Sequence record: NC_048792.1
DNA: 64,000 nt
Strand: one strand, 5' to 3'
Shown here: positions 41,606 through 58,795 of the stretch, piece after piece
How the letters are laid out: every line of letters begins with the position of its first letter
How positions within the stretch are numbered: the stretch's first letter is position 1
The notes under the pieces: model-generated
The model's input: only the letters and a program-made list of their open reading frames with translations
What the model was told of the DNA's origin: nothing
The model's database searches: none
Made by a program: the position numbers and the translations under genes

Positions 41606-41676
41606 TAAAAAGTGCATATACTGTGCTGTTAATCAATTCAGTTCCTAAATAACGTTATTTAAAGGAAAGAACCACA

Positions 41677-43971
41677 ATGGCAAGACCATCGAAAAGCGCA
41701 CTGCGCGGCAACCTGACCAAAAATCTGGTTGAGAAAATCCACAATGCGGTAATGCGCAACGTAAACAGCCTGGGCGAAGGCTCTGCCGCTGGCGTGATGT
41801 CCGTATCTCTGGAAAGCTACAACGACCTGGGTGTTAACGCTGCTGACGTTGACAGCACCCTGGATAACCTGACCCAGGATCTGGCCGAAGCGCAAAGCGA
41901 TGCGGTTGGTGCAGTAAACGCAATCGAGCAAGGTCAGTCTGACGGCGCCATCGTTCATGGCGGCGAGTTCATCGAAGAGAACGGTAACAAAGTAGCTGTT
42001 GAAGCTGCCGCTGTTCTGGCGATGTCCTTCAAAAACCCAGGCGCTTACTACAAGGACGGTTATTCTAACCCGGCCTTCGAAAGCGGCGTTATCGTCCACA
42101 ACATGGTTTCCTCCGGTGCCAACGGCGCCATCGCGACTCTGCCGGAAAGCAGCCGTCCGTCGTTCGAATCCTTCGACGAAAAAGAAACCGAAAAATGGCG
42201 TGAACACAGCTACGCTATCAACATGATGGCCGCTAAACAGCACCCATTCGCTGAACTGTTCTACCGCACTCAGATCATCACTCCTGACCAAGCCGGCTTC
42301 GTAATGTCGATCCGCCGTAACATGGTCTGGGAAACCTACCAGGGTACTGGTCTGAAAGGCGACGCCGTTAAATTCCAAAAACGTAACATCCTGCAAGGTC
42401 TGCTGGACTACACCGTTCTGGAAAGCAACAGCACCGAACTGATCCCGTGCATCCACACCGGCGAGAACGATGACCAGTTCATCGACCCGACCCTGGTTGC
42501 GCCGCGCAAAGTTGTTCAGTCCAACGAAGAGTTCGAAACCAACTACCTGAAATTCGGTGTTGGCTTCAACCTGCCAATGCTGGCACAGACTCCTTCTCGT
42601 CTGCAGAAAGGTTCTCCAACCTTCTCCGACTCCCTGGACAGCCGTATCGCGCTGAAAGATCTGCTGGTAACCGTTTCCAAAGGCGGCACCAAAGAAAACG
42701 TGAACTTCTTCGTGAACCGCGACCAGTACGCCGCGTACACCGCAACTCGCGAATACAACTTCCGTCAAATGCAGCTGAAATTCCTGTCGACCGTTTCTGT
42801 TAACGCAGAAACCAAAACCGTTGAAGGCGCGGAATCCGCTAACCTGAAAGGTCTGATCGACGCTGGCTACAGCATGGAACTGGCTGTTGGTATCGACGGC
42901 GAAGTAAACGTTGAAACCGGCTCCGGCGAAACCTACGCACGTCCTCTGAAAATCGCTAAGATCTTCGACAAAGACGGCGTTGAAATCGCACTGTCCGACG
43001 CGCGTGTTGCCGCTCTGATCGCTGGCCTGACTTTCGAAGCTGCGGGTTACACCCTGGAAGCTCGTCTGACCAACATCAACCAACTGGAACTGGGCCTGGC
43101 AATCGACTCCGACGTGATGAAACACGGCTTCATGATCCCAACTCTGCCGCCGCTGGTTATCATCAAGCCGGCTCTGCAAGACGAAGAGAAAGTGTATCCG
43201 CGCATCGAAGCGCTGACCACTGCTTACCGTGTGCAGATGCGTAACAACGCAGTAACCACCCTGCTGAACCGCCGCGATACTCTGAAAGCCTACCTGGGCG
43301 TTGGCGTACCGCACCCGATCGAATCTAACCAAGGCCTGGAAGGTGTCGGCCAATACTACGTGCGTCCGTACTACATGGAAGCCGAAGTAGACATCCTGAA
43401 AGATCTGAACAACCTGACCTCGGCTGCTAAGCAGACTGACATTCAGGGTCTGTTGGTTAGCAAGATCAACGAAATGGTTTACACCGCTGACCAGCTGACT
43501 GGTTACACCGCTGCTCTGGAAGCTGCCTTCCCAGGCCGTACTCCTAAGCCGCACGTAGCTATCGGTACCGACATGCGTCTGCCGCAGTACCTGCAGATTC
43601 CTGGCGACGACCGTACCGTTGGTATTGGTTACGACTACACCATCGCTCGTATCTCCGACCTGCGCATGAAAGATCAGATCATCATGACCTTCGTGCTGCC
43701 GAACGTTGACGAGCCGCACCCGCTGCAGCACGGCGTACTGGGCCTGATTCCGGAATACCTGGTTAACTTCCAGATGATCCGTAACCAGCGCATCGGTAAC
43801 GAAATCCGTCTGACTCCGCGCTACCGTTACTTCAACTTCCTGCCGATCATGCTGTCTATCACCGTGAAAAACCTGGAAGAAGCAATTGCGGCGCGTACCG
43901 CTCAGGCTAACGATGTTAAAGTCGTTAACGCCGACGAGTTTGGTAAAGGCGGCGAAGCTCCGAAACCTTGA
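41677..43971 (+). CDS. major capsid protein (phiKZ gp120-like)
   Basis: 764 aa, strongest codon bias in the window, propeptide with SLE/AVE/AFE/PSFE sites, and QHPFAELFY...PDQAG motif. Located between DnaB and nvRNAP. Confidence 0.85.
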   Translation: MARPSKSALRGNLTKNLVEKIHNAVMRNVNSLGEGSAAGVMSVSLESYNDLGVNAADVDSTLDNLTQDLAEAQSDAVGAVNAIEQGQSDGAIVHGGEFIEENGNKVAVEAAAVLAMSFKNPGAYYKDGYSNPAFESGVIVHNMVSSGANGAIATLPESSRPSFESFDEKETEKWREHSYAINMMAAKQHPFAELFYRTQIITPDQAGFVMSIRRNMVWETYQGTGLKGDAVKFQKRNILQGLLDYTVLESNSTELIPCIHTGENDDQFIDPTLVAPRKVVQSNEEFETNYLKFGVGFNLPMLAQTPSRLQKGSPTFSDSLDSRIALKDLLVTVSKGGTKENVNFFVNRDQYAAYTATREYNFRQMQLKFLSTVSVNAETKTVEGAESANLKGLIDAGYSMELAVGIDGEVNVETGSGETYARPLKIAKIFDKDGVEIALSDARVAALIAGLTFEAAGYTLEARLTNINQLELGLAIDSDVMKHGFMIPTLPPLVIIKPALQDEEKVYPRIEALTTAYRVQMRNNAVTTLLNRRDTLKAYLGVGVPHPIESNQGLEGVGQYYVRPYYMEAEVDILKDLNNLTSAAKQTDIQGLLVSKINEMVYTADQLTGYTAALEAAFPGRTPKPHVAIGTDMRLPQYLQIPGDDRTVGIGYDYTIARISDLRMKDQIIMTFVLPNVDEPHPLQHGVLGLIPEYLVNFQMIRNQRIGNEIRLTPRYRYFNFLPIMLSITVKNLEEAIAARTAQANDVKVVNADEFGKGGEAPKP

Positions 43972-44022
43972 ACTCTCGGAGAGGCGTTTGAGAACCCTCT
44001 TAGCGGGTTCGATCCTGCCTAG
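43969..44022 (+). other. putative UGA read-through extension of the capsid (X-TLGEAFENPLSGFDPA)
   Basis: 16 in-frame codons after TGA-A, ending at TAG 44020-44022, before the terminator. The peptide matches a motif repeated in tail proteins. Confidence 0.6.
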
Positions 44023-44038
44023 GCCACAAGCCAGTAAT

Positions 44039-44060
44039 CCAGGGACCTTCGGGTCCCTGG
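44039..44060 (+). terminator. rho-independent terminator of the capsid gene
   Basis: CCAGGGACC-TTCG-GGTCCCTGG followed by TTTATTTT. Confidence 0.85.
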
Positions 44061-44097
44061 TTTATTTTGCCCTATTTCCATATCGACTTAAGTTCAT

Positions 44098-46894: not shown

Positions 46895-49078
46895 ATGAGT
46901 GACTATAAATTTTCCGATCGTGACGTTGCTAATTTCGTTAAAGAAATCCTCGACACTGAATCTCGCCGTAATGAACTGATCGGCTATCTGGACGATCTGA
47001 CTCGTGATCGTCGTTCAGATGTTGGCGAGAAGCTGATGCGTTATGCAATCAGCGCTTATGCTCTGGAATATAACCGTACTAAGAAGTCTTCCGAAGACAT
47101 CGTGTACGATCTGGTTCTGTGGTATGCAGCTGCCCGTGCAGCAGACGACCGTGGGTTCACTCGTAACCTGAGCAATGCTGAAATGGATGACCTGGCCGAT
47201 ATGGGTCGCATGGCTCTGGAGATCATCGATGAGCTGGCAGAGATGAACGAATCTCGTGGCCGTGGTTATGGTCGTGATGATCGTCGTGGTGGTGGCCGTG
47301 AAAGTTCCTTCGGTCGCGCAGCACGCGAACAAGATCGTCGCGGTTATTCTGCCGGTGGTTCTCGTGGTTATGGCGGCGGTCGTCAGGAAGGTTATCGTTC
47401 CGACTATAGCTCTGCTGCAGCCCGTGGTGTAGATCAACGTGCTCCGCAGCGTCCAGTCTATGGCGAACGTGCCCATGCTCGGGAAGAGGCTCAGCCACGC
47501 GTCAAAACTGCATTGGATGTTATGGCAGAGATGCACCTGAAACGCCGCCAAGCTGAAGCTGGCATTCAGGAACCAGAACCTCAACCACGTCGTCAGGAAC
47601 GTCGTGTAGAGGAACCAACTCGCCGTGAACTTGCAACTCGTAACCCAGTAGACGCGGTTCGTCGTAACCATGCGCCTGCTTACGAGCGTGTAACTCCTGA
47701 AACCATCACCAGCAAACCAGAGTGGACTGCTGACCCGAATGGCCCAGTAGCAGGTAACGCTGACTTCATCCCAGATGACATCGGTCAGTGGGGCACTACT
47801 GAAAGCGGTAAAGTTCTGCCAAGTCCTGAGCGTCCTATCACTCAGTACGAAATCCTGAACAACTGCTATGACCTGAACGATATCGAAGTTGTGGAAGCAA
47901 TTCCAGAACGTCCACGTTTCAGTTGCAACGGTGCAGCCCCTTCCTGGGAAGCTGATGAAGTAGCGCCACAATGGAGCATCAACAAAGACGGTTATCGTGT
48001 ACTGGCTTTCCGTAAACTGTCTGAAGAGGAAAAAGAGAAAGTGCGTAAAGAAATCCACACTATGCCGGAAATCATCGGCGTACGTAATGGCCCAGGTAAA
48101 TCTCATCCACAACGCGAAGCTATTCTGCTGGCAGCTGGTAAAACCACCCGCTTCAATCTGGAAGAAGCACGTCGTCGTGAAGAAGAAGCTCGTAAAGAGT
48201 GGGAAGACGTTGTAGCTGTTCTGAAAGCAGAAAACGAAACTCTGCCAGAAGAAGAGCAAAAACCAATCCCGGATCTGGATCTGAGCGATTACAAACCGAC
48301 TATCGACGAAACTGTGAAAGTAGGTAAAGTGATCAAGGCATTCGGCCACGATGCGCTGGAAGTTAAGATCATGGATCTGCGTACTGAGCTGGATACCGAA
48401 TCCTCTCTGGATCTGCGTACTGAAAACTATCGTCCTCTGCACGATGCCGGTTCCGCTGAAGCAGCGCGTGAAATGATCGAAGGTCTGCGTGGTCTGGTGA
48501 TCACTGGTTCTCCGGTCTCTAACGTAACTCTGCCGCAGATGCTGCGTAGCTTCGAAAATCGCGTAGATGGTCTGCCAGGTCATCTGATCGTGTTCATCAA
48601 GCGCCACATCGTGAATGTCATCAACGATATCCTGGGCATGGAAATGGGCAGTACTCTGACCATCGACGACGTTAACGATCTGCGTACTATCGAAGCAGAT
48701 ATGGTTAAAATCGCCGGTGAAGAGTTCGCTGCTAAGTTCTCCGAAACGGTTAACGAAAACATCCGTCGTTTCGAGTTCCTGACTACTGGTGAAGATATGG
48801 GTAAACCAACCTATATCGTTAGCAAGAAATCTTCCGGCGTTCTGACCCTGCCGATGACTATTGCTGACATCAGCATGAAGAAACGTCCTGGTATCAAACT
48901 GATGTCTACCACGGTAAACCGTGATAGTGCACCAAAACTGTATCAAGCCCTGAACATGATGAACATGGCTCACGGTGGTTTCAACAAAGAGCTGTATCTG
49001 GCCGACGGCACCTGGGTTACTGTAACCAAAGATGCTATGGCTAAAGGTCAGTTCGTACTGGCTTACAAAACCGCATAA
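46895..49078 (+). CDS. large hypothetical protein with RG/RGG-rich disordered segment
   Basis: GRGYGRDDRRGGGR...SRGYGGGR low-complexity block. AGGAG SD and strong codon bias. Confidence 0.8.
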   Translation: MSDYKFSDRDVANFVKEILDTESRRNELIGYLDDLTRDRRSDVGEKLMRYAISAYALEYNRTKKSSEDIVYDLVLWYAAARAADDRGFTRNLSNAEMDDLADMGRMALEIIDELAEMNESRGRGYGRDDRRGGGRESSFGRAAREQDRRGYSAGGSRGYGGGRQEGYRSDYSSAAARGVDQRAPQRPVYGERAHAREEAQPRVKTALDVMAEMHLKRRQAEAGIQEPEPQPRRQERRVEEPTRRELATRNPVDAVRRNHAPAYERVTPETITSKPEWTADPNGPVAGNADFIPDDIGQWGTTESGKVLPSPERPITQYEILNNCYDLNDIEVVEAIPERPRFSCNGAAPSWEADEVAPQWSINKDGYRVLAFRKLSEEEKEKVRKEIHTMPEIIGVRNGPGKSHPQREAILLAAGKTTRFNLEEARRREEEARKEWEDVVAVLKAENETLPEEEQKPIPDLDLSDYKPTIDETVKVGKVIKAFGHDALEVKIMDLRTELDTESSLDLRTENYRPLHDAGSAEAAREMIEGLRGLVITGSPVSNVTLPQMLRSFENRVDGLPGHLIVFIKRHIVNVINDILGMEMGSTLTIDDVNDLRTIEADMVKIAGEEFAAKFSETVNENIRRFEFLTTGEDMGKPTYIVSKKSSGVLTLPMTIADISMKKRPGIKLMSTTVNRDSAPKLYQALNMMNMAHGGFNKELYLADGTWVTVTKDAMAKGQFVLAYKTA

Positions 49079-49590: not shown

Positions 49591-52389
49591 TCAGGGTGGT
49601 GCCAGGTTGTCGTCTTCAGCGGCTTGGAACGGATCTTCGTTTGCACGGTCACCGCCAAATTCATCTTCACGACTACCAAAGTCATTACCACTCAGGTCAC
49701 CCTCGCCGAAGTCTTCGAACTCGTCTGAACCCGTATCGAATTCTGAGTCACTGGAGCTATTGTCGCTACCCCAATCACTACCGCCTCCGAAACCGCCTTG
49801 GTTAGCATTTTCAATTGCTTGACTCAAGTCAGGGTTAGTTTCCTTCGTAACTTCCAAACGGTTCTCACGGAGCTGACGAATAACTGCAGCGGTGTCACCC
49901 AGGTTATGTACCAGGTTAGCCATGTGCGCATTCAGCTCTTTAGAGAAGTCAATCGCAGGGTTATCTTCGCTACCTACACGAGTCAGTTCACTCAGACCAA
50001 AGTCCATCCCCGTCTTAGCCAGGTACTCACGTTTGAAGTAAGCGGCCACGTTAGCTTTGAGGTGATTGATCTTATCTTGGTCTTCGTCGCCCAGAGAAGG
50101 CCCGATGAGTTCTGGCGAGATGTAGTTCTCAACCATGTCATCAATCCATTGAGAGACTTTGTCGTATTCTTCTTTCTGGTTCTCGATCCGGTTAGATTCA
50201 GGACGAGGAAGTTCCAGATAAAGGACGCGGAAGAACTCTTCAATGGCATCGGTATATTGCAGTGAGTATGGGTTACCCATATCGTTGCAACGGTACTCTT
50301 CTGGGAGCTGGTCGTTGTGTTCACGGAAGATCTCTTGGATACGGCCAACCAACGTACCGTCAGACAAGGTATAGGACTTAACAAACTTCTTACCGTGTTT
50401 GCAAGTGTCATCCTGAATCATCATGATACGTTTTGCATAAAGCTGGTTGGTTGTCCAGCGGGAGATAGCAAAGTCTGCCTGGGTAGTCATGTCCACCATT
50501 TCTGGTGTTACGAACAGACCCATGTATTGCTGACGTTGCAACTCACGAGAGAACTCTGGATCGATTTGTTGACGTTGAGATTGGAACTCAGAAACATCGA
50601 CAGTCGTGTTAGGCATACGCGGGTTACCTTGGACTTCAATAACCACACCCATGGAACGAATAACACGGAACATCTCAGCAGCAGACGTTACGTCTGTTGG
50701 AGTACCGCCAGCCTGTTGACGCATGAATTCATCGATCATGACGTGATACGCTTTGTCCGGATCAGGGTCACGAGGGTCAATGTTCATGGTAACTTTAGTA
50801 CGGCCAACTGCGTTCTTAACCCCAGCCATGAAGTTAGCAAAAGTTGTCATTGCACGCAGAGCGGATACTTGCTTGATGTCATCCATCAAGGATTTACCCA
50901 TGCCGTTCTTGTCGTAGTCGTATGCAAAGTACGCAACGTTCTCAACAGGTACGAATACCATATGGGTACGTTGGTTAGCAAACTTACGGAACAGGAACAG
51001 ACGCATGATATCTTCGTTCCAGCCCAACTTAACGTTACGGCCGAGCAAACCGTTTTTAATACGGTTAAGTACGTTCTCTTCCAGAACCTGGTCGAAGATA
51101 CGCACACGCTCAGCGGCGTTAGTTTTATCGGCATCGTAGCAAAGACCGGAACCCAACATCTTAGTCTGTTGAATAAGTGAAGAGGTCTGGTTCATCTGAC
51201 TGTCGCCGTTAAGACCATTGTTACCGTTCTTAACAGCACGAGCGATCTCGTCGGTTACATCCAACGGGTGACCAAGTTCATCCAGGAGAATAATGTAACC
51301 TAAGTGGTTGCGAGGCTCACCTTTAGGGAAGCACGGAATACAAGATTCACTTGGTACTTTAATAACCAGCGGGTGACCAATAGAAGAACGAGAAGCTTCA
51401 GCCGCCGTTGTCATTACCTTAACACGTTCCATCGCACTACCGTTGTCGCGATAGAGGCTGTTGGCAAGGGTGCGGATCTCCTTGATATGACCGTTACCGC
51501 TGCTAAAGGACTCGTTGGAAATACGAGTAGTCGAACGGAAAGAACGGTTCATTCGCTTCTGGTTGATCCGGTCACGAACCTTACCTAAACCGAGAACTGC
51601 AATGTTATCGGTAATGGTACATGCGTCGTTGATACGCGTAGGCGTTTCACGGTCACCGGCTGGGTTCCAGAAGAAGTTTTCCATGCTAGGAGTACTGACT
51701 TCACGTCGCTTCTCTTTCTTGGCTTCTTCTTCAGTAAGACCTGGGTCGCCCAAGATACCTTTACCGGTATGTTTCAACGTACCGTCTTTAAACTGTGATG
51801 CAATGTGGGCCGCGTACATTTCGTCGGTCATTGCAGCAGATTCGTTAGAGACGCCGTTATAGGTACGGTCGTTGATGATATCGTCGATTACTGCTTCAGG
51901 AACGATAACGCCAATCCAAGCACCGTAGTCGAACAATGCTTCACCGATGATCTCCGGCAGTTTATCGCGGAGAGGGTAATAACCACCATCACCGAAATGT
52001 TCGCGGATAACTTCCGTGATTTCATTCAGTATAGTAGGACGAATTTCTGAATCTTCTGTTTTAAAGACCAGCTCGCCGTCGAACATGTCTACAGGAGAAA
52101 GGGTGGTGGAAATGATCATTTGTTTGATCAGTTTCAAATCGCTACTCAGCTGCAGGATAGTTTCTGCATCCAAGTTCTTCTGAGCACGGTTTCCGACGAT
52201 GTGGTCGAAAATAGTCTCATTATGTACCTTAACACCTTCACCCTGGCTATGATCACCGGTTAAATGGTCACGTACCATCTTCGTCATGATAGACGTGGCA
52301 GCAGGCGTATTTTCTAACCATTTCGTGGGTTTACTCCGAACACTCGTATCGGGACCACTACTGGTAAGAGTAGGTTTCTTCATTATCAT
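49591..52389 (-). CDS. portal protein (phiKZ gp129 / SPN3US gp81-like)
   Basis: 932 aa with IISTTLSPVDM, ALFDYGAW.G...PE and GKSLMDD. Internal SNE/SME sites. Divergent from the baseplate gene, as in phiKZ. Confidence 0.7.
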   Translation of the reverse strand: MIMKKPTLTSSGPDTSVRSKPTKWLENTPAATSIMTKMVRDHLTGDHSQGEGVKVHNETIFDHIVGNRAQKNLDAETILQLSSDLKLIKQMIISTTLSPVDMFDGELVFKTEDSEIRPTILNEITEVIREHFGDGGYYPLRDKLPEIIGEALFDYGAWIGVIVPEAVIDDIINDRTYNGVSNESAAMTDEMYAAHIASQFKDGTLKHTGKGILGDPGLTEEEAKKEKRREVSTPSMENFFWNPAGDRETPTRINDACTITDNIAVLGLGKVRDRINQKRMNRSFRSTTRISNESFSSGNGHIKEIRTLANSLYRDNGSAMERVKVMTTAAEASRSSIGHPLVIKVPSESCIPCFPKGEPRNHLGYIILLDELGHPLDVTDEIARAVKNGNNGLNGDSQMNQTSSLIQQTKMLGSGLCYDADKTNAAERVRIFDQVLEENVLNRIKNGLLGRNVKLGWNEDIMRLFLFRKFANQRTHMVFVPVENVAYFAYDYDKNGMGKSLMDDIKQVSALRAMTTFANFMAGVKNAVGRTKVTMNIDPRDPDPDKAYHVMIDEFMRQQAGGTPTDVTSAAEMFRVIRSMGVVIEVQGNPRMPNTTVDVSEFQSQRQQIDPEFSRELQRQQYMGLFVTPEMVDMTTQADFAISRWTTNQLYAKRIMMIQDDTCKHGKKFVKSYTLSDGTLVGRIQEIFREHNDQLPEEYRCNDMGNPYSLQYTDAIEEFFRVLYLELPRPESNRIENQKEEYDKVSQWIDDMVENYISPELIGPSLGDEDQDKINHLKANVAAYFKREYLAKTGMDFGLSELTRVGSEDNPAIDFSKELNAHMANLVHNLGDTAAVIRQLRENRLEVTKETNPDLSQAIENANQGGFGGGSDWGSDNSSSDSEFDTGSDEFEDFGEGDLSGNDFGSREDEFGGDRANEDPFQAAEDDNLAPP

Positions 52390-52442: not shown

Positions 52443-55013
52443 ATGGCGGATACCACGCAACGATTGTACGTTGATGGCGCAATGAGTCTAGCGCAGACGA
52501 TGACAATCAAGTTCAACGCCGGTGCGGTAGCGATCAACAATTATTTAACCGAAATAGGTTACACCGTTGACCCTAATGTTCCATCCACTTGGCGTTACTA
52601 CATGAACCTTGCTGGCAAGTATCATGTCAGTAATCAGCAAATGAAAGTGACCTCCTTGGACACCTTGGAGGAGATTGACTTCACATATGATAACCTCTTA
52701 ATCCACCGAGCTACTAAAGCAGCCTATAAGTACGGTTCCCGTTACTACAATGAACTTGTAGAACAATACCCAGAACAGGAATTGTTAATTCGGGGTGTTT
52801 TATGGCCAGTGGATATTGACAAGGCGATTGATGCCAAGGACTTCACTATCCTTTATTACGATAGTGACGAGGTTGATCCCAATGAAACGTATTTGATCCA
52901 GGATCTCCAAGAATGGATTTACCGGTTTACGTATCGTTGGTATCTAGTATTTGCTGCAGCTGTACAAAAATATTACCCGGCGACGTTTTTTGGGACTTTA
53001 TTTATTCACCTGGTTGGTGAGATAATCAGCATTCGTGAGAACTATTGCCGTACTCAATACGTGCATAGCTATCACCTTTGGGCGTACCTTGGTTCACACG
53101 GTCGTCTGAATGCGTACAAGGATTACGTCAACATTACCCAGGCGTTGTGGTTGTACCGTAATATTCGCTACATCGATAACCACGCCGGTAAAACGACTAC
53201 CTTTGATGATCTTATCCTTAATATCCTGACCGCCCGTAACATCCCGCTGACAGCTTATTTCCTGCGCCATAACTCGAAGGATGTTCCTGAGTCCATTCTC
53301 CCTGAAGGGGAAGTAGCTAAGGATCCTAAGAACTACCTGGCAGAGTCCGTTCAAGGTATCGAACGAATCTCAATTGGGGAGGCTCTGGATAACGAAGTTA
53401 ACTCGGCTAAGGATAACGATAAGTATCTGGCCAAGCAGAAAATCGATGTTCCTATTCGAGTCGCTAACGCCATTACCGGTGAGCTACCTACTAAGGTACT
53501 CGAGTCGGTCATGATTGACCGTTCAGATTCTGTACCGCACAAGTTTGTTGATACGTTAATGGGTGAGTGGATCTATCTGGCGACTGAAGGTCGTTACGTA
53601 GCGAACATCACTATCCCTAACCCGGCTACGCAAGAAGCCATGTCGATGACGGTAAGGGAAGCCTTGATCCTTTGGGTCTACTGTGCGATGCGTCAGTTTG
53701 AAATGGTACTGGAAGACGTCCCTGATCTGACAGCCTGGTTTGTGCAACGTCTAGCAGCTCCTGAGTTCTCTGAACTGCGTGGTGTGTGCGAACCTAAGTA
53801 TGTCAGTGAAGCGGCTATCCTGATGGCTCTGACTGAGCATACTCCGGTGTCTACTATTATCTCGACTGAAGCGTTCTACAACACTGTAGCTCAGATTCAA
53901 AGTAACATTAACGCCCATCGTGTCATGTACACGCGTCAGCAAGACTTCCGTGCTCGTGGCCAAATGGAAGTGATGACCAATCGCTTTTACATCAACAAGA
54001 AATGTCAGTTGTCAGCCACACCGATTAAATACGCAGACTGGTTCCACACCAAGAACTGGGATATGGAGTTGAGTTCTCCAGAAGCGTATTCCGATTTCTG
54101 TTTCCAGCTAATAGAAGTTGCAACGGGTGCTAACCTGCGCTCAACGATATCGGTGTCCGATGTACACAGCGCCATGATAGCGATCATGACTCAGCTGTCC
54201 AGTTACTCTGTACAGTACGTCCACAAAACTAACGCATCTCCAAACATCATTGTTGATAACTTGGCGATTCGTTTCGGTGGCATCGAGTCTCGTCCTAGCG
54301 CCGACTTTAAAATTGACCAACGCGTTGAAATCATTAACCAGTACCAACGTGGTAAACTCTCTCCTGACAAGTCTGCATTTGAAGGGATTGAGATTGGCTC
54401 GAAGTATATTCATGCACCGCACTTCTACCGTGTGTTCTCGTCCGTGAACTTCCTGCCAGATACCCATGTTGCTACTCGTCACCAGATTGAGATCGCTGAG
54501 GTTAGGTTCAAAGGTTCGCTTGCTAAAGATATCGGTCTTGAGATCAGTAAGCATGATCTTGATGGCCTGTGGCTTTATCTGGCAACCGCTCGTCCAATTA
54601 ACGAAGTCATCACTAACCCAAGGCTACCTGGGTTGTGGGTACGCGTACCTCGTGAAGATGAGTACTTACCTAACGAGATTACCAAAACCGATATTGAAGG
54701 GCTGTGGACGAATGTTATCCCTGGCCCAGAGAAATTGGTCATTGGCAATAAACCACTCCCAGGTCTGTGGTTAGAGCCTATCGTTCCTTACGAGTTGGAA
54801 GACTTTAAAGAACGTCTCGAAGGTTTCGATCCACCTGAACCATTTAAACCAACTACGTTGACTGATGGTTTCGATGAGAATCTGGGTGGCTTCGTTGGGT
54901 ACATTGAACCTGAGTTTGACCTCTTCAATATAGAGGAAGAACTTCCTGGCTTCGATTCGCCTGATAGCGAACCAAAAGCACCTTACGATTTCTCTGCTTT
55001 GTTTGGCGAGTAA
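52443..55013 (+). CDS. baseplate wedge protein (phiKZ gp130-like) with C-terminal LxG[LF] repeats
   Basis: WRYYMNLAGKYH and LWLYRNIRYIDNHAGK motifs. Seven C-terminal repeats. Confidence 0.65.
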   Translation: MADTTQRLYVDGAMSLAQTMTIKFNAGAVAINNYLTEIGYTVDPNVPSTWRYYMNLAGKYHVSNQQMKVTSLDTLEEIDFTYDNLLIHRATKAAYKYGSRYYNELVEQYPEQELLIRGVLWPVDIDKAIDAKDFTILYYDSDEVDPNETYLIQDLQEWIYRFTYRWYLVFAAAVQKYYPATFFGTLFIHLVGEIISIRENYCRTQYVHSYHLWAYLGSHGRLNAYKDYVNITQALWLYRNIRYIDNHAGKTTTFDDLILNILTARNIPLTAYFLRHNSKDVPESILPEGEVAKDPKNYLAESVQGIERISIGEALDNEVNSAKDNDKYLAKQKIDVPIRVANAITGELPTKVLESVMIDRSDSVPHKFVDTLMGEWIYLATEGRYVANITIPNPATQEAMSMTVREALILWVYCAMRQFEMVLEDVPDLTAWFVQRLAAPEFSELRGVCEPKYVSEAAILMALTEHTPVSTIISTEAFYNTVAQIQSNINAHRVMYTRQQDFRARGQMEVMTNRFYINKKCQLSATPIKYADWFHTKNWDMELSSPEAYSDFCFQLIEVATGANLRSTISVSDVHSAMIAIMTQLSSYSVQYVHKTNASPNIIVDNLAIRFGGIESRPSADFKIDQRVEIINQYQRGKLSPDKSAFEGIEIGSKYIHAPHFYRVFSSVNFLPDTHVATRHQIEIAEVRFKGSLAKDIGLEISKHDLDGLWLYLATARPINEVITNPRLPGLWVRVPREDEYLPNEITKTDIEGLWTNVIPGPEKLVIGNKPLPGLWLEPIVPYELEDFKERLEGFDPPEPFKPTTLTDGFDENLGGFVGYIEPEFDLFNIEEELPGFDSPDSEPKAPYDFSALFGE
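54510..54965 (+). repeat. 7 degenerate peptide repeats L-x-G-[LF]
   Basis: DLDGLW, RLPGLW, DIEGLW, PLPGLW, RLEGFDPP, NLGGFVG, ELPGFDSP. Confidence 0.8.
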
Positions 55014-55079: not shown

Positions 55080-55919
55080 ATGGCAAACGCGAATTACTAC
55101 AATAAGCCCACTAACCGATTAGTCTTTGACTTGATCAAAGAAGCTAACCCGGAAGCGGACTTCTCAGAAGATCAAGTAAGGTTAACGAACTTTACCCAGA
55201 ACACCAATGGCGACCCGTTACGTAACACCGCAGGTATTCTGAAAGCAATCCCTGGCATGGGCCGTGAAGGTCAAGAGAACCTGACCTGGAACCGTCCTGC
55301 ACTGAACGAGATCTTTAAAGAGATCAGCGTTTACTGTTCCCCTAACGGTAAGTTCAAGAAATCTGACTTACTGAAAGAAATCAACAGTAACTATAACTTC
55401 CAGCTGGACGCCGGCGATATTTACGACGGCGTGTTGAACCTGTCAACTCTACCGACCAAAACGGTTATCGTGGTTCGACCTACCTGTCCTGCTTTTACTG
55501 GTCAGTTAGAGATTACCATTGGTGATCCTAAGATCGCTCTGGAGACGGTTATTCGTAACCCTGACCTGGATGGCCTGGCTTACCCTACCAACCAGTCTGA
55601 GAAGATCCAAGGTCCTCTGTACATGTATGCCAATGACTACACGTACGATGCCACTGGTCTTCAGCAGTTTGGTTACGGCGATCCTATCCAAGGCGAACTC
55701 CTGGAAAGCCTCAACCGTAAATCGCCAGACACCTGGGTACTGAAACCTACCCCTGCTCCGTGGAACGCTAACGGTGCTGACGTATGGTACAATGGCCCGA
55801 CTGCTCAGGCTCCGGTATACGTGAACACTTCGTATCAGCGCTGCTTGGTTATCCACCTGGATAAAGAGTATTGCTCTAACGTCGCTGGTCACTTGATCCT
55901 GCATTACAACATGCCATAA
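55080..55919 (+). CDS. tail/baseplate-associated paralog-family protein
   Basis: N-terminal LVFDLIKEAN...RNT...G.....NR domain ending ETVIRNPDLDGLAYP, then a C-terminal domain like the phiKZ gp131 family. Confidence 0.6.
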   Translation: MANANYYNKPTNRLVFDLIKEANPEADFSEDQVRLTNFTQNTNGDPLRNTAGILKAIPGMGREGQENLTWNRPALNEIFKEISVYCSPNGKFKKSDLLKEINSNYNFQLDAGDIYDGVLNLSTLPTKTVIVVRPTCPAFTGQLEITIGDPKIALETVIRNPDLDGLAYPTNQSEKIQGPLYMYANDYTYDATGLQQFGYGDPIQGELLESLNRKSPDTWVLKPTPAPWNANGADVWYNGPTAQAPVYVNTSYQRCLVIHLDKEYCSNVAGHLILHYNMP

Positions 55920-56055: not shown

Positions 56056-56589
56056 ATGGCACGTATCGCGTTTAACCCGGCAAACTCTGCCGATGATGAA
56101 TTCACTCGTCTCCTGGTAAATGGTACTATCATCCCAGAGCTGAAAGCAATTAAACTGACCACCGATTACACCGTCACCACCCCTGCCGCCGCTAACACCG
56201 GTGAGAAAGATGGTAACACCGTTATCGGCCTGACCCCTGCGGCTGGCAGTAAATTGTTGAAAGGCGACGCGCGTGAGTTCTACTACGATCGTCTGAGCAT
56301 CGCTTCTGAACTGACCCGTAAAGCAGTTAACCTGAAGTCTGCTGATGCACTGACCCCGGCTAACCGTGACGCGTTCGCCCTGACCTGCGTAAAAGCAGTT
56401 TGGGACAAATTCGTTGCTGCTGACGTCGTGTTCAAAGAAGACAAAACTGAAGGCGAAGTTGTAGCGTACGTCTACACTATCAAAGCCGACAACAAAGTCT
56501 TCAACGGCGAATTCACTATCACTTCCGGCGACCAGACTCTCCAGTCCTTCAGCGAGAACCTGGGCGGCTTTGACGCACCGGCTGCGTAA
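56056..56589 (+). CDS. abundant virion paralog-family protein
   Basis: GNTVIGL...GDAREFYYDRL single domain ending TLQSFSENLGGFDAPAA. Highly optimised codons. Confidence 0.6.
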   Translation: MARIAFNPANSADDEFTRLLVNGTIIPELKAIKLTTDYTVTTPAAANTGEKDGNTVIGLTPAAGSKLLKGDAREFYYDRLSIASELTRKAVNLKSADALTPANRDAFALTCVKAVWDKFVAADVVFKEDKTEGEVVAYVYTIKADNKVFNGEFTITSGDQTLQSFSENLGGFDAPAA

Positions 56590-57646: not shown

Positions 57647-58795
57647 ATGAGTACTATCTTTGGCCACGATACCATCAAGGCTGAAGTTATCGATTTAATC
57701 AATAAGAAGAATGCTCAGTTTGGTGCAGACTTTACCGAGGACAACCTCGAAGTCACGTGGCTCAGCTACGATGCACTAGACCGTCGTCAAACGATGATGA
57801 CGAAAGATCTTTCTGGTCGATACTTTGGTTTACGTGATATCCGCTTCTTCAAACGCGATTACGATCTCCTCTTTAAAGGGATCGACGTAAAGATCCAGGT
57901 AGGTTCAGGCTACAACAACCGCGCGGTGCTCAAAGAGCTTTCTCGTGCATACGGGTTACCTCCATTCGAAGATTACGACTTTGCTCCAGGTCTACTGGAC
58001 ATGTCTATCGAAGTAGGTGACCACGAGCAATTGATCGAATGGCCATTTGCTGACTCCAGCTGGGGTTGGACAGGGACTTGTCGATTCAAGCTCCGTAACA
58101 TGAAGACCTCGCTGGAAACGCTTATTCCAGACGGTACATTGGATCGATTCCATCCAGAAGAGCTGAAAGGCGTCTTCTACGAATTGGTCAACGGTACGTT
58201 GAGTGGATTGGATTACCCAGAATACTTCGACCTTGGTAAGATCATTACGGTCACCGATCTCGAAGGTTTGGAATACCCAGACGATATCGACTTGGGTGTT
58301 ATTATCCATACCACAGATCTGGAAGGTCTGGAATATCCGCCGATGACTGATATCAGCAAGTTCCAAACTAGCGATCTCCAGGGCTTGGAATATCCTCCTG
58401 CTTACGACTTGACTAAACTCAATGTCTTTGCATTGGCCGGTCTGGATTATCCGAGCGGTACTGGCGCAGGTCAAACTTCTGCGTACAGCACGACCTACCC
58501 GCTGGACTTCTCTGATTACCAACGTGCAATCCGTACTTATCGTTTAGGCGATACGATCACGGACGTTAACTTGGTGAACGTCATTGTTAGCATGATCCAG
58601 TCTAACTGGACTAAGCTGCAGGGTGAGACTAACAAGTCTAACCTCTTTAACTCCTTCTTGAATGCGACCATCCAGAGCATTGAACAGAAACGTTCGATCC
58701 ATGGTTGGACTATTTCGGTTGGCGTTAAGTTGAGTTCTCAACGCGTACTTCGCGGCAATGCCGTGCTGCGTTACGACATCCAATCTGAATATTAA
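57647..58795 (+). CDS. tail paralog-family protein with tandem LEGLEYP repeats
   Basis: VIDLINKKN N-terminal domain followed by about six ~19-aa repeats. Confidence 0.65.
   Translation: MSTIFGHDTIKAEVIDLINKKNAQFGADFTEDNLEVTWLSYDALDRRQTMMTKDLSGRYFGLRDIRFFKRDYDLLFKGIDVKIQVGSGYNNRAVLKELSRAYGLPPFEDYDFAPGLLDMSIEVGDHEQLIEWPFADSSWGWTGTCRFKLRNMKTSLETLIPDGTLDRFHPEELKGVFYELVNGTLSGLDYPEYFDLGKIITVTDLEGLEYPDDIDLGVIIHTTDLEGLEYPPMTDISKFQTSDLQGLEYPPAYDLTKLNVFALAGLDYPSGTGAGQTSAYSTTYPLDFSDYQRAIRTYRLGDTITDVNLVNVIVSMIQSNWTKLQGETNKSNLFNSFLNATIQSIEQKRSIHGWTISVGVKLSSQRVLRGNAVLRYDIQSEY
58100..58455 (+). repeat. tandem ~57-nt peptide repeats (L..I..TDLEGLEYP)
   Basis: TLSGLDYP, DLEGLEYP twice, DLQGLEYP, ALAGLDYP, plus a degenerate TLDRFHP. 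Confidence 0.85.

Follow-up and report, generated by a model that had tools for sequence, protein, structure and literature searches.

Why should the major capsid gene of a jumbo phage end in a UGA codon beyond which the same reading frame continues, up to a second stop codon, with a peptide that recurs in other proteins of the virion? The locus that raises this question lies in a window of 64,000 nucleotides (nt; the whole stretch of DNA that was analysed) from sequence record NC_048792.1, which is 100% identical to Serratia phage Moabite (MK994515), a window position being the record position minus 62000. Moabite is a phiKZ-like jumbo phage with a genome of 274 kilobases (kb) that also encodes a PhuZ-type tubulin. 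Comparison of the locus with its relatives suggests that programmed UGA read-through probably appends a peptide for docking DUF7941 proteins to a minority of the capsid subunits, and that the extension is translated appears highly likely.

An open frame behind the UGA stop of the capsid gene

The capsid gene and its 3' end comprise the following features:

41677 to 43968 (TGA to 43971), + strand: major capsid protein open reading frame (ORF) of 764 codons, HK97 fold, annotated in MK994515 as major head protein
43924 to 43968, + strand: final 15 capsid codons, variable, Gly/Pro-rich, ending in Pro, indel-rich in relatives
43969 to 43971, + strand: UGA stop, proposed read-through site, next base A; TGA kept in 20 of 20 extension-bearing relatives
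43972 to 44019, + strand: in-frame extension of 16 codons, a copy of the DUF7941 tail/linker motif, TLGEAFENPLSGFDPA
44020 to 44022, + strand: TAG, the second stop, which closes the extension; position kept in 2050HW, BUCT660 and Totoro
44039 to 44068, + strand: intrinsic terminator of the capsid transcript, annotated in MK994515, 16 nt past the TAG and 67 nt past the TGA

The capsid ORF matches the Pfam family PhiKZ_MCP (PF25620) with an E-value of 5.5e-228 and 758.7 bits (cut-off 27), and its solved relatives in the PDB are those of PhiKp24 (8bfl), Goslar (11bt) and phiKZ (8y6v). The alignment of the Moabite protein to 8bfl ends at residue 749, 15 residues short of the stop codon. An earlier reading of the window from its letters alone, hereafter the original prediction, had the gene ending ...APKP-TGA with a continuation in the same frame to TAG, and the letters of the peptide are exactly as it gave them. 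The extension stands in the zero frame relative to the capsid ORF, and no in-frame ATG, GTG or TTG was found in its 16 codons. The original prediction had also held that the terminator lies at the usual distance from the TAG and not from the TGA; both distances match the annotated hairpin, and the remaining annotated terminators of the Moabite genome lie 1-17 nt past their stop codons. The pairing of the terminator stem is retained in Totoro via compensatory changes.

The stop codon, frame and peptide in relatives

Alignment of the sequences behind the capsid stops of related jumbo phages, a check that had been proposed together with the read-through itself, found TGA and an in-frame peptide with coding-like changes in 20 distinct relatives, each peptide directly after a TGA. 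The phages concerned are Moabite-, PCH45-, PhiEaH1-, SNUABM_54-, RP12-, Goslar-, phiKZ- and 201phi2-1-like; the searches for related loci, made with single proteins or small alignments, recovered few loci from IMG/VR or metagenomes. The closest relatives, 2050HW, BUCT660 and Totoro, retain the TGA, the TAG and the length of 16 codons. PhiEaH1 and PCH45, with the C-terminal 199 residues of the capsid protein about 63% identical, have a TGA followed by a related in-frame peptide, as do SPLA10 and four metagenomic contigs, the extensions in this set being 18-55 codons long. The arrangement of TGA plus peptide persists where the compared capsid regions are 24-37% identical, namely in pEa_SNUABM_54, RP12, Goslar, phiKZ, 201phi2-1 and six IMG/VR contigs of the phiKZ/201phi2-1 clade. 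Across lineages the extension ranges from 15 to 55 residues, and in every one of them conservation begins at the first codon past the stop. It is without annotation in every record examined; the phiKZ peptide alone occurs, unannotated, in about 60 Pseudomonas phage records including PhiPA3 (tblastn).

Capsid lineages without a conserved continuation all end in TAA (9/9): the FBKp24 group, the KpLz group, one IMG/VR contig, Eowyn, the SPN3US-type SEGD1, Ea35-70, RSL2, DT01 and a Bacillus phage. On the sequence comparison, the retention of TGA, frame and peptide in 20 distinct relatives exceeds chance. The claim of UGA read-through thus finds support in the division between TGA with the peptide (20 of 20) and TAA without it (9 of 9), together with purifying selection on the extension, the lack of a start codon within it in Moabite and the lack of a suppressor transfer RNA (tRNA) in the same genome, the first and last of which are treated below.

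The extension copies a motif of wedge and DUF7941 proteins

When the capsid peptide was compared with 743 ORF segments of the genome by local alignment, the ORFs 52443..55013 and 56056..56589 ranked first and third. They lie downstream of the capsid gene together with two further ORFs that bear the motif:

52443 to 55013, + strand: gp128-like baseplate wedge protein (PDB 9xqs_C, PHIKZ128, E 2.7e-110; Goslar 11lx; phrog_3222)
55080 to 55919, + strand: full-length DUF7941 protein, phiKZ gp127-like (PF25613, E 8e-81, 271.9 bits; 9xqd, PHIKZ127, E 0.004)
56056 to 56589, + strand: small DUF7941-like virion protein of 177 residues (phrog_1037, E 2e-6; DUF7941 21.2 bits, below the 27-bit cut-off)
57647 to 58795, + strand: DUF7941 N-domain protein with five spaced motif repeats at 58199-58453 (PF25613, E 4e-22, 79.3 bits)

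The closest copy of the capsid extension is formed by the last 17 residues of ORF 56056 (56536-56586), where 10 of the 14 residues aligned between TLGEAFENPLSGFDPA and the tail end TLQSFSENLGGFDAPAA are identical. Since seven of these ten are specified by different codons, the likeness appears to have been retained at the protein level and not to reflect a fresh DNA copy, and a recent duplication between the capsid 3' end and ORF 56056 was rejected on the same ground. The tail is conserved in three homologues of ORF 56056; the counterparts of this ORF in Goslar, Phabio and the SPLA10-like L075 are clear DUF7941 members, and that of PCH45 has a match to phrog_2935 only. In ORF 52443, the product of which corresponds to a protein placed in the baseplate wedge by the 2026 phiKZ atlas (gp128; PMC13250141), the C-terminal 150 residues hold six motif copies, of which the three at 54816-54836, 54855-54893 and 54942-54962 resemble the capsid peptide closely, and the linker of ORF 55080 carries the motif at 55566-55586; copies were located with degenerate patterns of at most 20 residues. 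The resemblance to the C-terminus of ORF 56056 and to three copies in ORF 52443, which the original prediction had noted, was found again at 56536-56586 and 54816-54962.

A separate observation concerns ORF 57647, where five Leu-x-Gly-Leu-Asp/Glu-Tyr-Pro copies follow the DUF7941 N-domain at intervals of about 20 residues. If each copy binds one N-domain, the protein could be a branching hub for filaments.

Motif and partner change together from clade to clade

In every lineage in which both partners were read, the extension and a DUF7941 tail or linker share a motif, and the two change together. In the enterobacterial clades the extension also copies the tail of the gp128-like wedge protein. 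The PCH45 extension has counterparts in the wedge tail, in a DUF7941 linker and in the tail of the small protein; that of L075 matches the wedge tail and the tail of a 179-residue DUF7941 protein; and in the SNUABM_54-like L076 the extension ends in GFTREQVN and the wedge tail in GFTPKDVR. In Goslar, the core of the extension, LDDNVADGFIAP, pairs with the tail core of a 180-residue DUF7941 protein, LADNVADGFVKP, with a score of 58 against 35 for the next best segment; this pair was found by direct reading, the match being too short for recovery by tblastn. The motif of the phiKZ clade is quite different and consists of three Arg-x-Leu-Glu-x-Gly-type repeats, which the extension shares with the gp143-like DUF7941 protein, where they lie in the tail. 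Both partners were read here in the phiKZ-like PA7, Phabio, 201phi2-1 and three IMG/VR contigs, and eight further gp143-like tails bear the same repeats. In five further lineages the best match of the extension within the retrieved neighbourhood is a DUF7941 or wedge tail. The DUF7941 family (PF25613) was matched with 72 bits by the Goslar 180-residue protein, 46.9 by the L075 179-residue protein and 28.8 by Phabio_216. Among 120 gp128-like proteins collected from public data, most have a C-terminal tail of the motif kind. The claim that the extension is a tail-type docking peptide accords with these comparisons: the putative docking peptide copies DUF7941 and wedge tails and co-varies with them between clades.

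The FBKp24 group (Klebsiella; L009-L011, P0011-P0024) has lost the capsid extension and stops at TAA, and its wedge tail retains the motif, so the baseplate use of the motif looks ancestral or independent of its use in the capsid. In the PCH45/SPLA10 group (PCH45 at L013 1201-1344; L014, L024, L075), the extension runs to 45-55 codons, and a second conserved block, a Thr-Val-Asp-Thr-Glu ... Pro-Ile-x-Leu-Glu stretch, lies behind the docking motif.

A possible anchor for DUF7941 filaments on the head

DUF7941 proteins are chimallivirus-specific and very abundant in virions. Their linker/tail region is predicted by AlphaFold 3 to dock on the N-domain of the next protomer, head-to-tail; purified Goslar gp22 forms filaments, as seen by electron microscopy (EM); and a cloud of filaments on the peripheral baseplate has been proposed to serve host finding (all 10.64898/2026.04.21.720040). 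The same preprint mentions neither the capsid gene and its stop codon nor the tails of the wedge protein. We found that the short DUF7941 proteins with extension-like tails cover only the N-domain-plus-linker part of the Pfam profile, and because they span no more than these parts, the peptide that they share with the capsid would be the region predicted to dock. On the side of the capsid, each phiKZ hexamer has at its centre a bundle made up of the C-terminal arms of its six subunits, much as in PhiKp24, and in the phiKZ pentamers the arms contact an external decoration protein (PMC11297242). The Goslar capsid has 1615 subunits, and its capsid protein with a C-terminal fusion to green fluorescent protein behaves like capsids in infected cells (10.64898/2026.04.21.720040).

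We propose a model in which most ribosomes terminate at the UGA and yield the normal capsid protein of 764 residues, and a minority would insert an amino acid there, most likely Trp from a near-cognate tRNA of the host, add 16 residues and stop at the TAG. The leak would be favoured by a poor termination context, with Pro as the last residue and A as the next base. Each extended subunit would display one docking site for a DUF7941 N-domain, because the peptide copies the DUF7941 tail/linker region predicted to dock, and this site would be located at the capsomer centre, since capsid C-termini meet there in the solved relatives. The head, and not only the baseplate, where the wedge-protein tails would offer the same docking site, could then anchor fibre filaments in small number, set by the rate of the leak. 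Production of the extended protein, its quantity, its display on the capsid and its binding to the N-domain of DUF7941 are points that we infer from the sequence. The anchoring of DUF7941 filaments on the head by extended subunits seems possible to us, with doubt holding a slight edge. More tentatively still, UGA leakiness in the Chimalliviridae, the jumbo phages that form a nucleus, may act as a dosing device that sets a handful of docking peptides on a head of 1615 subunits, with host-searching filaments springing from capsid and baseplate alike and the wedge peptide as their long-sought anchor on the baseplate.

Several observations weigh against this model. No PDB chain was found by sequence searches to contain the phiKZ or Goslar extension, the published cryo-EM capsid models of both phages stop at the annotated end, and filaments on capsids go unmentioned in the structure papers on phiKZ and Goslar (PMC11297242, PMC13250141, 10.64898/2026.04.21.720040). 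In the wedge-protein tails of phiKZ and Goslar the motif was not found; there it occurs in DUF7941 tails only. Several DUF7941-bearing relatives, for instance those of the FBKp24 group and the RAY/Ea35-70 type, are without the extension, which is thus dispensable in some lineages. ORF 56056, which carries the closest copy, scores below the Pfam cut-off for DUF7941 (21.2 against 27 bits), and its AlphaFold model, built from four sequences, is unusable with a mean predicted local distance difference test score (pLDDT) of 37. Folding of the RNA of 13 phages did not reveal a conserved stimulator of read-through, so the rate could be very low. Finally, the lineages share a common ancestry, and the counts of conservation and substitution given here are not counts of independent events.

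The extension might also be read through and serve a role other than anchoring. It could cap DUF7941 filaments or compete with their polymerisation during assembly, link capsids within the cell with baseplates or with another shared partner, or arise as the by-product of a slow-termination signal by which capsid synthesis is regulated. The docking that our model presumes has been predicted with AlphaFold in a preprint (10.64898/2026.04.21.720040), and published capsid maps report no filaments. Moreover, Pro-stop contexts are generally known to stall termination. However, stalling alone would give no reason for the peptide to change in step with DUF7941 and wedge tails, as it does in six lineages, and capping and tethering would still use the same docking interaction. 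We therefore regard a non-anchoring role as unlikely, although it deserves to be kept in mind.

How the UGA may be passed

In Escherichia coli, UGA terminates most strongly when U is the next base and less well behind a C-terminal Pro or Gly, and the near-cognate tRNA that usually reads this codon is tRNA-Trp. The base after the TGA in the 20 extension-bearing relatives is A in 8, C in 7, G in 5 and U in none, whereas U is the commonest fourth base at ordinary TGA stops of Moabite (31 of 78). The residue before the TGA is Pro in 6 relatives, Gly in 4, Ala in 4, Glu in 3 and another in 3, which gives Pro or Gly in 10 of 20. ARAGORN detected no suppressor or selenocysteine tRNA in 262 of the 274 kb of Moabite, only Tyr(gta) and Ser(gct), and the genome paper likewise lists two tRNAs in total.

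No common RNA structure surrounds the stop in 13 phages, the predicted folds differing from one to the next with most z-scores above -2. The original prediction had placed the stop in the loop of a CTCCGA/TCGGAG stem: the two complementary stretches are indeed present (43958-43963 and 43976-43981), but the minimum-energy fold does not pair them, neither 2050HW nor Totoro conserves the stem, and the stem-loop was rejected. A hairpin of the selenocysteine insertion sequence (SECIS) type directly after the UGA was rejected as well, as the folds differ between phages, and a programmed frameshift of the T7 10B type is at odds with an extension in the zero frame.

The TGA is no peculiarity of the capsid gene. 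An approximate Moabite gene set of 295 ends in TAA in 183 cases, in TGA in 78 (26%) and in TAG in 34; the statement that nearly all other highly biased genes end in TAA hence proved too strong, TAA being merely the commonest stop and the portal gene also ending in TGA. Because it ends about 26% of genes, TGA is a working stop codon in Moabite, and reassignment of the codon by a suppressor tRNA was rejected on this count and on that of the two sense tRNAs. Among the TGA-ending genes compared, the capsid TGA is the only site showing a conserved in-frame continuation; other TGA-ending neighbours (the portal gene and the gp127-like genes of phiKZ and Goslar) were considered as read-through sites and dropped, the frame behind their stops not being conserved. 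Since what the phages have in common appears to be the context of the stop, with no conserved fold and, in the 262 kb of Moabite scanned, no suppressor tRNA, leaky termination with a near-cognate tRNA of the host appears to be the most economical mechanism.

The UGA might instead be decoded efficiently, by selenocysteine insertion, a phage suppressor tRNA or a phage factor blocking release factor 2 (RF2), in which case most subunits would be extended. The strict conservation of the UGA would suit such decoding, the hosts are Proteobacteria, some of which are generally known to have selenocysteine machinery, and a protein factor of an unknown kind would be compatible with the sequence data. The tRNA complement, the want of a conserved hairpin, the use of TGA at about a quarter of gene ends and the solved capsids, which are modelled to the annotated end, speak against it, and efficient decoding strikes us as very unlikely compared with a leak.

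Two observations on neighbouring stops and on nascent chains may be recorded here. The portal gene (49591-52389, - strand) ends in Pro-Pro-TGA behind a long acidic C-terminal tail, and the frame past this stop is not conserved in PCH45, phiKZ and Goslar, where TAA closes the portal genes. Genes for an SspB-family protein (L039 29167-29652) and an HslV/ClpQ-like protease subunit (L040 29459-29986) lie in the Moabite genome outside the window, and these may be relevant if stalling at the Pro-stop context causes tagging of nascent capsid chains.

The extension changes like translated sequence

The ratio of nonsynonymous to synonymous differences per site (pN/pS; Nei-Gojobori) in the extension codons is 0.25-0.52 in 8 of 9 pairs and 0.77 for PCH45 against L008, with pS mostly at 0.5-0.8; the Moabite extension gives 0.25-0.30 against 2050HW and Totoro. 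Third codon positions account for 125 of 252 pairwise differences overall (20/35, 39/74 and 66/143 by group), the three variable sites within the extension of three Goslar-like genomes are all synonymous, and indels and other changes of length preserve the frame. As many as about 30% of the extension nucleotides differ from one close relative to another. Moabite and 2050HW, the capsid proteins of which are 99.5% identical, differ at 15 of the 48 extension nt, which form the most diverged stretch of the region between nearly identical flanks, and the peptide is retained nonetheless. This substitution pattern is, to judge from the alignments, that of translated sequence, despite the shared ancestry of the lineages.

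It bears directly on the view that the 48 nt are untranslated, whether they act in the 3' untranslated region (UTR) as an RNA or DNA element or are the slowly decaying relic of a once longer capsid gene. Downstream intergenic DNA is also highly conserved among the closest relatives, and a run of 16 open codons past a stop can readily arise by chance. Yet an element of this sort would hardly be the most diverged stretch of its surroundings while keeping its peptide, nor would it be expected to change with a bias to third positions and to lack a conserved structure, and a relic would not retain TGA, frame and a clade-specific match to DUF7941 tails across capsid regions that are 24-37% identical. 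An untranslated element or relic is accordingly a shade less probable even than efficient decoding. A separate micro-protein made by re-initiation past the capsid stop, a process generally known from compact genomes, is scarcely conceivable, as the Moabite extension has no in-frame ATG, GTG or TTG and conservation starts at the first codon past the stop in every lineage.

Seen at the level of DNA, roughly the last 10 capsid codons together with the extension (within 43924-44019) differ from 2050HW by about 30%, against near identity of the intergenic DNA and baseplate genes downstream. This stretch is probably a small mosaic patch imported through recombination.

Relation to known capsid extensions

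Small RNA phages and certain plant viruses are the textbook examples of read-through at the stop codon of a coat gene. The coat gene of Qbeta closes with a leaky UGA and so yields a minor, C-terminally extended coat protein (A1), present in few copies per particle and involved in host interaction. The likeness to Moabite lies in the UGA, here proposed to be leaky, at which the capsid gene ends. The systems differ in that Qbeta is a small single-stranded RNA phage, its coat fold is unrelated and its extension of about 200 residues is a folded domain in itself, whereas Moabite is a tailed phage with 274 kb of double-stranded DNA (dsDNA), an HK97-fold capsid of about 1600 subunits and, in its family, a linear docking motif of 15-55 residues. 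Recoding at the 3' end of the major capsid gene is shared with T7 (gene 10A/10B), Listeria phage PSA and Lactobacillus phage A2, in which a frameshift produces a minor longer protein at a fixed ratio; there the ribosome shifts by -1 or +1 at a slippery site, but in Moabite translation would stay in frame, with the stop codon itself as the signal. Some phages reassign TAG or TGA genome-wide with suppressor tRNAs, so that the stop is read as sense in late structural genes, a situation unlike that of Moabite, with no suppressor tRNA, TGA at the end of about a quarter of the genes and a single site with a conserved continuation. The polymerisation of DUF7941 proteins (Goslar gp22/gp23; phiKZ gp126, gp127 and gp143) is predicted to employ the linker/tail motif that the capsid extension shares; the filaments described are on the peripheral baseplate only, however, and the capsid protein has no DUF7941 domain and would offer the peptide alone.

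To our knowledge, stop read-through has not been among the devices of tailed dsDNA phages, in which the capsid extensions described so far arise by frameshifting. The original prediction had known of no such description for phiKZ-like capsids, and full-text searching (with subscription-only papers outside its reach) likewise found no publication on capsid stop read-through in these phages. None is mentioned in the phiKZ capsid paper (PMC11297242), the phiKZ atlas (PMC13250141), the Goslar preprint, the phiKZ transposon study or the Moabite announcement. If the proposal is true, tailed dsDNA phages would gain their first example of programmed stop read-through that serves virion structure, one that the annotations of the model phages phiKZ, PhiPA3, 201phi2-1, Goslar and PCH45 lack, and it appears to be conserved in the whole family, which includes the main laboratory models of jumbo-phage biology. 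It would link two questions raised by the 2026 virion structures, how DUF7941 filaments are anchored and what purpose the variable capsid C-terminus serves, to which a shared and co-varying peptide offers a concrete, testable answer. In practice, proteomic databases and structural models of these phages would be missing one virion protein species.

Other features of the region

A 690-codon ORF runs antisense to the capsid gene (41659-43731, - strand), and a similar ORF of 652 codons lies antisense to ORF 46895..49078. Codon bias most likely accounts for both, with nothing to suggest that either is a gene. Outside the window, at record positions 175465-202437 (L038 49465 to L039 26437), about a dozen genes are annotated as tail fibre proteins, and this run resembles that of PhiKp24, a phage with hyperbranched fibres.

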